Below, piece by piece: positions 21,076 through 23,719 of a DNA stretch of 64,000 nucleotides. Numbering within the stretch: position 1 is the stretch's first letter; every line of letters begins with the position of its first letter. Position numbers and translations under genes: made by a program. This DNA comes from Chlorokybus atmophyticus (taxonomy: Eukaryota > Plantae > Mesostigma and Chlorokybus algae), in assembly GCA_009103225.1 (NCBI GenBank), contig RHPI01003508.1:1-64000 (forward strand), given 5' to 3'. A model generated the notes under the pieces. It was not told where the DNA came from, searched no databases, and saw nothing but the letters and a program-made list of their open reading frames with translations.

Positions 21076-23719
21076 ATGGAGGCGGCGAGGTCGTCGTGGA
21101 CGACCGTCCTGGTCGCGCTGCTTGCGGTGCTTGCAGTGACGTCGGTAGACGCCAGACATTGCTACGGCAACAACGACCTGAAGCTGATCCTGGACGCTGC
21201 GTACAGTGAGCTGGTCAGTGAGCAAGCTTGCAAGTGTACATGCGTCGAGCTTGTGAAAAGACGCAACTGAACTTGAGCTACTTGTATGCTTGTGGACTTT
21301 GAGCACGGCAGCGCACCGACTTGACAGGTTGTCGTGTAGAAGCGCTTACCGAAGCATGCGGCAACTTGCACGCAAGCAACCTTGCATTCTAAATGCAGGC
21401 ATGGTTAGCAAATCTTGTCGTTATAATGGCAGTGTCTGCATCTTTTACTGGCATTATCAACCTTGCTTAGCAAATGACCAGCAAGGTTGACCCTCGCGAG
21501 CATGTGTCATTGCAGTACCTAGGCTGGCTTGCCTGGATTATTCATCTTGTCTCTTGCTTGCCTTATGTTTTCATGCACCTAATTGACAAGCAAGTTGTAC
21601 TATGTGTGTACGAGTACGTATACATATGCATAATAGCGAGTGCGTCCGTGCTTGCGTGTAGGCACCTATGTGGTGGTTCAAAGCTAACATGATGTGCCCT
21701 GTGGCTGCCAGTTGGCCAGCGGTTACTGGGCGCAGACCATTGGCGCTGACATTTACACCAGGAAGTCTTTCTACTGCCTTCCGGATGTGTCCGCATCAAG
21801 CGCTGCCAACTCCAGCAGTGTGTACCCGTACCCCGACCCCCTTGACCTCGGTGGCACGGCTTACACCGCTACCTACGGTGCCAGGAGAATAACAATTGGT
21901 GAGTCTCTCTCTCTCTCTCTCTCTCTCTCTCTCTCTCTCTCTCTCTCTCTCTCTCTCTCTCTCTCTCTCTCTCTCTCTCTCTCTCTCTCTCTCTCTCTCT
22001 CTCTCTCTCTCTCTCTCTCTCTCTCTCTCTCTCTCTCTCTCTCTCTCTCTCTCTCTCTCTCTCTCTCTCTCTCTCTCTCTCTCTCTCTCTCTCTCTCTCT
22101 CTCTCTCTCTCTCTCTCTCTCTCTCTCTCTCTCTCTCTCTCTCTCTCTCTCTCTCTCTCTCTCTCTCTCTCTCTCTCTCTCTCTCTCTCTCTCTCTCTCT
22201 CTCTCTCTCTCTCTCTCTCTCTCTCTCTCTCTCTCTCTCTCTCTCTCTCTCTCTCTCTCTCTCTCTCTCTCTCTCTCTCTCTCTCTCTCTCTCTCTCTCT
22301 CTCTCTCTCTCTCTCTCTCTCTCTCTCTCTCTCTCTCTCTCTCTCTCTCTCTCTCTCTCTCTCTCTCTCTCTCTCTCTCTCTCTCTCTCTCTCTCTCTCT
22401 CTCTCTCTCTCTCTCTCTCTCTCTCTCTCTCTCTCTCTCTCTCTCTCTCTCTCTCTCTCTCTCTCTCTCTCTCTCTCTCTCTCTCTCTCTCTCTCTCTCT
22501 CTCTCTCTCTCTCTCTCTCTCTCTCTCTCTCTCTCTCTCTCTCTCTCTCTCTCTCTCTCTCTCTCTCTCTCTCTCTCTCTCTCTCTCTCTCTCTCTCTCT
22601 CTCTCTCTCTCTCTCTCTCTCTCTCTCTCTCTCTCTCTCTCTCTCGCTCTCNCTCTGTCGCTCTCGCTCTCTCTCTGTCGCTCTCGCTCTCGTTCTCTCT
22701 CTCGCTCTCGCGCGCGCATTCTTGCTCTCGCTTGCTACAGATATTGGTCGTTGAGCATGCTTGACTGACTTGAGAGCAACACACTGGCAACTGTCACTGT
22801 GTGCATGCTTGATTCCAAGTGCTGGCTGGCAGGCACCATCGGCGGCTTGAAGACTTTGTACACTCTTGCGAACGGAACGAAAGTGTCAGCTATGGACACC
22901 ACAAGCGAAACTCCATCAGGTGCGTATAAGAGTTGAAGTCCAGTTTCCATGGTATCCAGCAAGCATGTCAGCTGCACACAGCTGCAAGGTTGCTGACAAG
23001 GCTTGCTGGCTGCATGTGCAGGGCTGTATTTTGACTTCATTAACAGAATGTTCGACATTGTACACGTGCGCTACGGCTTGCGTCGGCGTGTCAGAATTAC
23101 ATGGGCCTACTTTCCATCTGAAGCAGCTGTATTTCAGGTAATGTATAGTCATGCAGTCCGCTTAACTGAACATTTCAGTAGCTCTTGAATCCTCATATAA
23201 TGTTCTGCTATGCAACTCATGCAGCAACTTGGCAACTTTACCGTGGACTTGGTTGTGGGGCCAATCAACCCGGGAGGTGCGATATCGGGGAACACTGGCC
23301 CGTCGGCTATAAATGGAAGGAAGACCACTTACTTCCAGCATACTTGCTTGCTGGGAGAGAACACAGAGGGCCGGCTGCTGGTCCTTGCATCTTCACCCTA
23401 CTCAACAGCTTACACCCTCACAAAGACGTCGACTTCCTCCAACCCAAAGTATATTGGCACGCTTGGGGAGGGCCAGGCTGCCCTATACAAGGTCATCTAT
23501 CCGACAATGGCAACCAGAGTCTATCTGAGTGAGGCAGCCCTTGTCAATGCTGTCCTCAACGGCAATGTTGATGCTGCAGCGTATGTGCCAACCACGGTTC
23601 CGAACCCCAGCCTGAAGTTCTTGAACAACCCCATTCTTACCACGAGCTCTCCTACGATATTTGTGCGCAACAACATTGTCGGAATCATAGTTTGCCCTGC
23701 AAGCGAAATGGAAACATGA
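21076..23719 (+). CDS. Secreted stand-alone type-II periplasmic-binding-fold protein (family-3 SBP/iGluR-LBD-like), about 340 aa, 5 exons
   Basis: Exons 21076-21213, 21712-21898, 22833-22919, 23022-23137 and 23225-23719 splice in frame with GT-AG introns. Signal peptide [29 protein letters not shown]-like motifs [59 protein letters not shown]. Confidence 0.75.
21904..22710. repeat. Very long (CT)n microsatellite inside intron 2 of the SBP-like gene
   Basis: Pure TC repeat at 21904-22645, degenerate to about 22710. Confidence 0.98.

Follow-up and report, generated by a model that had tools for sequence, protein, structure and literature searches.

A candidate circularly permuted solute-binding protein, predicted to be secreted, from a five-exon orphan gene of the alga Chlorokybus atmophyticus

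A five-exon gene and its product

Within the window, i.e. the whole 64,000-nucleotide stretch of Chlorokybus atmophyticus DNA that was analysed, reconstruction of open reading frames and splice joints yields a gene on the + strand, at 21076-23719, whose five exons specify a product of 340 aa. Exon 1 (21076-21213, residues 1-46) contains the start codon, the signal peptide, Cys29 and the first half of a helix-like segment. Exon 2 (21712-21898) encodes residues 47-108 together with the first base of Gly109, and exon 3 (22833-22919, residues 109-138), which is of phase 1 at both ends, encodes an insertion-like loop with the sequon N122. A presumed first helix is at the start of exon 4 (23022-23137, residues 138-176), and the rest of a presumed lobe 1, a presumed lobe 2 and the stop codon are in exon 5 (23225-23719, residues 177-340), the C-terminal part of which provides a returning strand and a short tail. 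Intron 1 (21214-21711; 498 nt, GT..AG) was taken from a listing of donor/acceptor pairs, intron 2 (21899-22832) is 934 nt long, and intron 4 (23138-23224) separates exons 4 and 5. All four introns are GT-AG, the exon phases agree, and GC3 of the gene model in frame is 0.63 versus 0.49 for GC1, GC2 and the introns. An earlier note on this DNA had proposed an intron-containing gene, which the five-exon GT-AG model bears out, and the strings that it quoted are real under that model, with RITIGT at residue 104 and GLYFDF at 138. With its splicing being predicted, the gene is very probably real as modelled.

The joint between exons 1 and 2 (21213|21712, ctg|GTCAGT ... ctgccag|TTG) is of special relevance as it creates the helix-like segment. 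When each GT in exon 1 was paired with each AG past the in-frame stop at 21685-21687, 21213|21712 was the best in-frame pair, its donor, GTCAGT, being atypical with a C at +3. Two stronger GTGAGC donors, for introns starting from 21206 and 21218, are in phase 1, and among all the donor/acceptor pairs listed there is no phase-1 acceptor for them. An exon 1 ending at 21205, an outcome that the earlier note recognized would change the segment, was rejected for want of an in-frame AG acceptor, a result that favours 21213. Other in-frame joints between the two exons are possible, at 21200|21720, 21252|21712 and 21135|21712.

Intron 2 is almost filled by a near-perfect (TC)n microsatellite of 806 bp (21904-22709), which has about 400 units with 97-98% matches and contains a single N near 22653, and the degenerate end of which, with TCGC and TCTG variants, reaches about 22720. 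Two short ATG ORFs in other frames, 20996-21139 and 21021-21209, are found immediately ahead of the start codon at 21076 or overlapping it, and could act as uORFs if they are within the 5' UTR. A second open frame of 74 codons on the + strand, 21668-21892, covers almost all of exon 2, and is closed by a TAA immediately upstream of the exon 2 donor, making it incompatible with the downstream exons.

The signal peptide is of textbook type (residues 1-26, 21076-21153), with cleavage after VDA26 and RH as the mature start. Four cysteines are present in the 340-aa model, at residues 29 (codon 21160-21162), 68 (21775-21777), 217 (23345-23347) and 333 (23693-23695), as are three N-x-S/T sequons, N79, N122 and N180. 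The helix-like segment, residues 31-58, is encoded in two parts, residues 31-46 (21166-21213) and 47-58 (21712-21747), and is followed by a Ser/Tyr/Pro/Ala-rich linker that includes Cys68 and the sequon N79 (residues 59-103; 21748-21882, in exon 2). The presumed first strand, RRITIG, is at the end of exon 2. At the other extremity, residues 323-340 (23663-23716, + strand) comprise a presumed last strand and a tail, with the protein ending 7 residues past Cys333, where the last helix of a family-3 solute-binding protein (SBP) would begin. Charged residues constitute 14% of the composition, and Thr, Ser, Gly and Tyr are abundant. No hydrophobic segment beyond the signal peptide is present in the 340-aa model, and the gene model has no membrane or channel part, which supports the earlier view of a stand-alone protein; the signal peptide, the sequons and the even number of cysteines are likewise in keeping with the secretion proposed for it. 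The locus is probably a real, lineage-restricted gene with a secreted, and probably N-glycosylated, product of about 34 kDa.

Searches for relatives were uniformly without yield. Neither Pfam nor NCBIfam gave a family at E<=10 for any exon taken separately, no exon taken singly attained the gathering score of the curated SBP_bac_3 (PF00497) model, and exon 5 had no match in a sequence search of the PDB. Word searches with exon 5 and with exon 2 were also negative, the latter being scored within the long read-through ORF, which made proteins of 200-620 aa candidates. With phmmer, exon 5 had no match at E<=0.001 among 1.84 billion cluster representatives standing for 15 billion predicted proteins. 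The protein itself was absent too, and this genome's own proteins seem to be missing from the collection. That collection thus contains no relative with an identity of roughly 30% or above, and because of the size of the database the null result has no bearing on very distant PBP-II kinship. A tblastn comparison of exon 5 with plasmids gave one match only, to a DndD gene and no better than chance at E=2, a language-model atlas search with exon 4 gave no usable match, and hhalign with exons 1, 2 and 4, each alone, gave nothing significant. By these comparisons the protein is an orphan, lacking detectable relatives in the databases searched. As no homologue was found, there is no alignment to support a fold.

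Evidence bearing on the fold

The earlier note regarded the protein as belonging with the family-3 SBPs. Several weak and mutually consistent signals speak for that assignment, with exon 5 being the richest source. Its ten best language-model neighbours are all PBP-II families (SBP_bac_3, NMT1, Phosphonate-bd) with a score of 0.91 and a recognition of 3164, a score to be read in the knowledge that shuffled proteins attain 0.9 in 4-10% of cases. Alignment of exon 5 by hhalign with seven E. coli paralogues gives P 0.035 in the expected register, the match covering the family stretch GKxVGV..GT...V.Y......DL..GRiDA and placing NGNVDAA of exon 5 on GRiDA. With 23 diverse SBPs the same motif is found at P 0.094.

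Two profiles were used for the joined model: an LAO-type profile of 31 sequences built for this analysis, and a broader one of 33 sequences below 55% identity that includes 18 plasmid SBPs. (A GlnH word search gave close orthologues only, and diversity came from a genome scan and the 18 plasmid SBPs.) With hmmsearch --max and the 340-aa model as single target, E is 0.041 and 0.037, and the score is reached by 64 of 2000 shuffles (P 0.032). When the profile is divided into nine conserved blocks, five score at chance level. The best site for the first-strand block, with the broad profile only, is RRITIG at 104, and that for the first-helix block, with both profiles, is GLYFDF at 138, each being where the earlier note had placed it. 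The strand-helix(L..G..D)-strand block matches twice, at the positions expected for two lobes, with P about 0.007 both against shuffles and against real E. coli proteins cut into 139 chunks. The first of these motifs (23096-23266, residues 163-190, + strand; 12.0 bits) spans intron 4 and is formed by splicing only, and the second (23507-23590, residues 271-298, + strand; 9.4 bits) is in presumed lobe 2. Gapped local alignment to the profile is at z 2.3-2.5 above shuffles, whereas a colinear alignment with lenient gaps, at z 0.75, is no better than shuffles. Structure prediction was uninformative: AlphaFold with exon 5 alone as a single sequence gave a model of mostly strands at pLDDT 37.9, and the Foldseek comparison of that model with the PDB was noise.

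The family-3 assignment is favoured but unconfirmed: the exon 5 neighbours, the hhalign register and the L..G..D pair are consistent with it, while no curated model matches and E stays at about 0.04. Judged by such sequence comparisons, a PBP-II-like fold has the balance of probability slightly on its side. All P values for fold and for permutation are within 0.0004-0.09, no test reaches proof, and the values overstate the case because it was this very appearance that led to the gene's selection for testing.

The most probable alternative is that this is an orphan secreted protein of the cell wall or mucilage, possibly beta-rich, with a fold unrelated to PBP-II, and that the SBP matches are chance ones picked by eye, in which commonplace amphipathic helices and strand-helix-strand units happen to look alike. 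Pertinent to it are the lack of any family, PDB or homologue match at any threshold, the chance-level scores of most profile blocks together with the lenient-gap z of 0.75, the strand-dominated, low-confidence AlphaFold model and the 4-10% of shuffled proteins that attain an atlas score of 0.9. The low charge and the richness in Thr, Ser, Gly and Tyr also count; such a composition is typical of algal wall proteins and differs from that of bacterial SBPs, and it keeps this alternative alive. Set against it is the convergence of independent weak signals, from different residues, on the same family in the correct register (the exon 5 neighbours, the L..G..D pair and the N-terminal helix considered below), with two of the motifs being formed by splicing only. 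An unrelated fold is a substantial possibility, at rather less than even odds.

Order of the structural elements

The central claim is that the segment immediately after the signal peptide resembles the helix that ends family-3 SBPs. It was assessed with an ungapped sub-profile of 28 columns for that last helix. With the LAO-type version, residues 31-58 score 13.7 bits, a value reached by 2 of 5000 shuffles, by none of 139 real E. coli chunks and by none of about 46,000 windows from 123 real non-SBP proteins, the best of which scored 12.4. With the broad version the score is 10.4 bits (P 0.0035 against shuffles and 0.036 against real proteins). The resemblance is above chance in both, and the next best site anywhere else in the protein is at <=0.1 bits. 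The C-terminal amphipathic helix (..eL...ln.al.el..dGt...i..kw) expected after the last strand is absent from the C-terminus, and no open piece within 7 kb downstream fits as an exon that could provide the missing helix.

Block order points the same way. With the nine blocks chained in each of nine cyclic orders, the order with the helix first is best with both profiles (37.2 and 36.0; P 0.008-0.043), the normal order scoring 29.6 and 29.1. When the sequence is doubled and aligned with gaps, the alignment passes from lobe 2 via GIIV over the termini into the helix. The mature N-terminus, RHCYGNN, falls on the same profile columns as the returning strand, and therefore Cys29 and Cys333 flank the presumed cut. 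The strand before the cut had been taken to be SPTIFVRNN. IVGIIVC (residues 327-333) is the more likely candidate because its distance from the lobe-2 motif, 52 residues, agrees between profile and protein. The Ser, Tyr, Ala and Pro richness of residues 59-103 is as expected of a putative linker joining the old termini.

From these observations an explanation can be put forward in which the protein would be a highly diverged two-lobed 'Venus-flytrap' binder of the PBP-II / family-3 SBP kind. The C-terminal helix by which lobe 1 is normally closed would be encoded first. Next would come some 45 residues of flexible linker and then the usual strand and helix order, and the chain would stop at the strand after which the last helix normally comes, an arrangement that amounts to a circular permutation. 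Cys29 and Cys333, flanking the cut, could staple it by a disulfide, and Cys68 and Cys217 would make a second one. Each weak test favours the permutation proposed earlier and none proves it; neither a family model nor a homologue nor a confident structure speaks for it. Circular permutation is suggested tentatively by the order of the sequence motifs, and a permuted binder, though unproven, is the best single reading, to be held with corresponding reserve.

A related but unpermuted alternative is a diverged PBP-II-like protein that has lost its C-terminal helix, with the N-terminal helix being an unrelated extension or a pro-segment. In its favour, the core motifs are independent of the helix, and the helix match falls to P 0.036 against real proteins when the broader profile is used. 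Its difficulties are that the sole segment fitting the C-terminal-helix profile precedes the first strand, that the protein stops within about 7 residues of where the helix would be expected to start, and that Cys29 and Cys333 are on opposite sides of the presumed cut. Known structures also suggest that the sheet of lobe 1 would be exposed if no helix covered it. Overall an unpermuted protein seems unlikely. More unlikely still is that the model does not represent a functional gene, the locus being instead a pseudogene, an unexpressed chain of ORFs or a gene with another first intron or an extra exon, and the helix an artefact of splice choice. Points in favour of this are that no protein like it occurs among 15 billion predicted proteins, that the exon 1 donor has a C at +3 with two better GTGAGC donors adjoining, and that other in-frame joints exist (21200|21720, 21252|21712 and 21135|21712). 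Against it, the GTGAGC donors are without an in-frame acceptor, the five open exons agree in phase, the signal peptide is of textbook type, in-frame GC3 is raised, and two of the proposed joints give rise to motifs that score above chance.

Returning to the permuted binder, its full form is a natural permuted family-3 flytrap from one of the earliest-branching streptophyte algae, with its helix N-terminal, its cut re-closed by Cys29-Cys333, a stand-alone apoplastic role and a divergence that has put any relatives beyond detection by sequence. A probability of about one in three is assigned to that combination, which is a testable hypothesis and not a result. If it is true, it would be a natural case of a rearrangement that engineers make deliberately in PBP scaffolds, and the plant lineage would have in it a rare flytrap protein that is secreted and stands alone. 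It would then have a bearing on the evolution of the fold, on possible bacterial-to-algal gene transfer, and on the extracellular capture of nutrients or signals in early land-adapting algae. If it is false, the protein is one more lineage-specific secreted protein.

Ligand, known counterparts and surroundings

In HisJ, LAO and GlnBP an Arg binds the ligand carboxylate, and the Asp that follows GRiDa holds the alpha-ammonium group, with a GT-T motif also being characteristic. The earlier designation of the protein as amino-acid-binding is not supported, as neither the ammonium-binding Asp nor the GT-T motif is kept in the alignments, themselves weak: opposite the Asp there is a gap, or else Val or Pro, and GT-T reads GEG. 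The only likeness to the carboxylate-binding site in these weak alignments is the Arg-x5-Phe motif GRKTTYF, in which the carboxylate-binding Arg may be kept. A small solute would be bound in the cell wall or mucilage by a protein with no attached transporter or channel, and a standard alpha-amino acid is an improbable ligand.

The closest known counterparts to the proposed binder are the bacterial family-3 SBPs (SBP_bac_3, PF00497; E. coli GlnH, HisJ, ArgT, ArtJ, TcyJ and GltI). Their mature core is similar in size and the order of the presumed elements agrees with theirs (an I-x-I-G-T strand, a G-x-x-x-D-hydrophobic helix start, two L..G..D units and R-K-x-x-x-F); one algal helix fits their last helix, and the algal protein is likewise secreted by prediction. 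It differs from them in having no model-level match and a helix that is N-terminal instead of C-terminal, and in its long insertions, 45-residue linker, four introns and eukaryotic source; the loss of the Asp and of GT-T, as read from weak alignments, is a further difference. The ligand-binding domain of iGluR, plant GLR and GluR0 (S1S2; Lig_chan-Glu_bd, PF10613) is an extracellular use of the PBP-II fold that extends to eukaryotes. Unlike that domain (PF10613/PF00060) the algal protein is without a pore or membrane segment, is not split by a channel and has no Pfam match, and the rearrangement proposed for it is a permutation rather than an insertion.

That the fold tolerates permutation is known from engineered circularly permuted periplasmic binding proteins used in biosensors (reviewed in PMC6335823). 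Those permutants share with the proposed algal protein new termini and linked old ones, but are laboratory constructs. In the literature searched, the permuted PBPs found were all engineered ones; a family-3 SBP with a natural circular permutation was not among them, and reports of such proteins from algae were likewise absent.

Scanning of neighbouring long ORFs with Pfam, which covered part of the neighbourhood, revealed no ABC-transporter gene. The only match was about 14 kb upstream, where two adjacent long ORFs on the - strand (5744-7400) match the CNNM (cyclin M / DUF21) transmembrane domain, PF01595, at E 7e-8 and 3e-3, and are probably exons of one gene for a CNNM-type Mg transporter-like protein. 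On the other side, long ORFs at 50327-50821 and 61753-62259, occurring on both strands, have no Pfam match and are in very AT-rich islands, with a GC of 0.18-0.26 at all codon positions, the window as a whole being at about 0.49. Low-complexity sequence, the remnant of a transposon or an insert of organelle origin could account for them. The 48-52 kb block has a GC of 0.41 and the 52-56 kb block that follows it one of 0.58.
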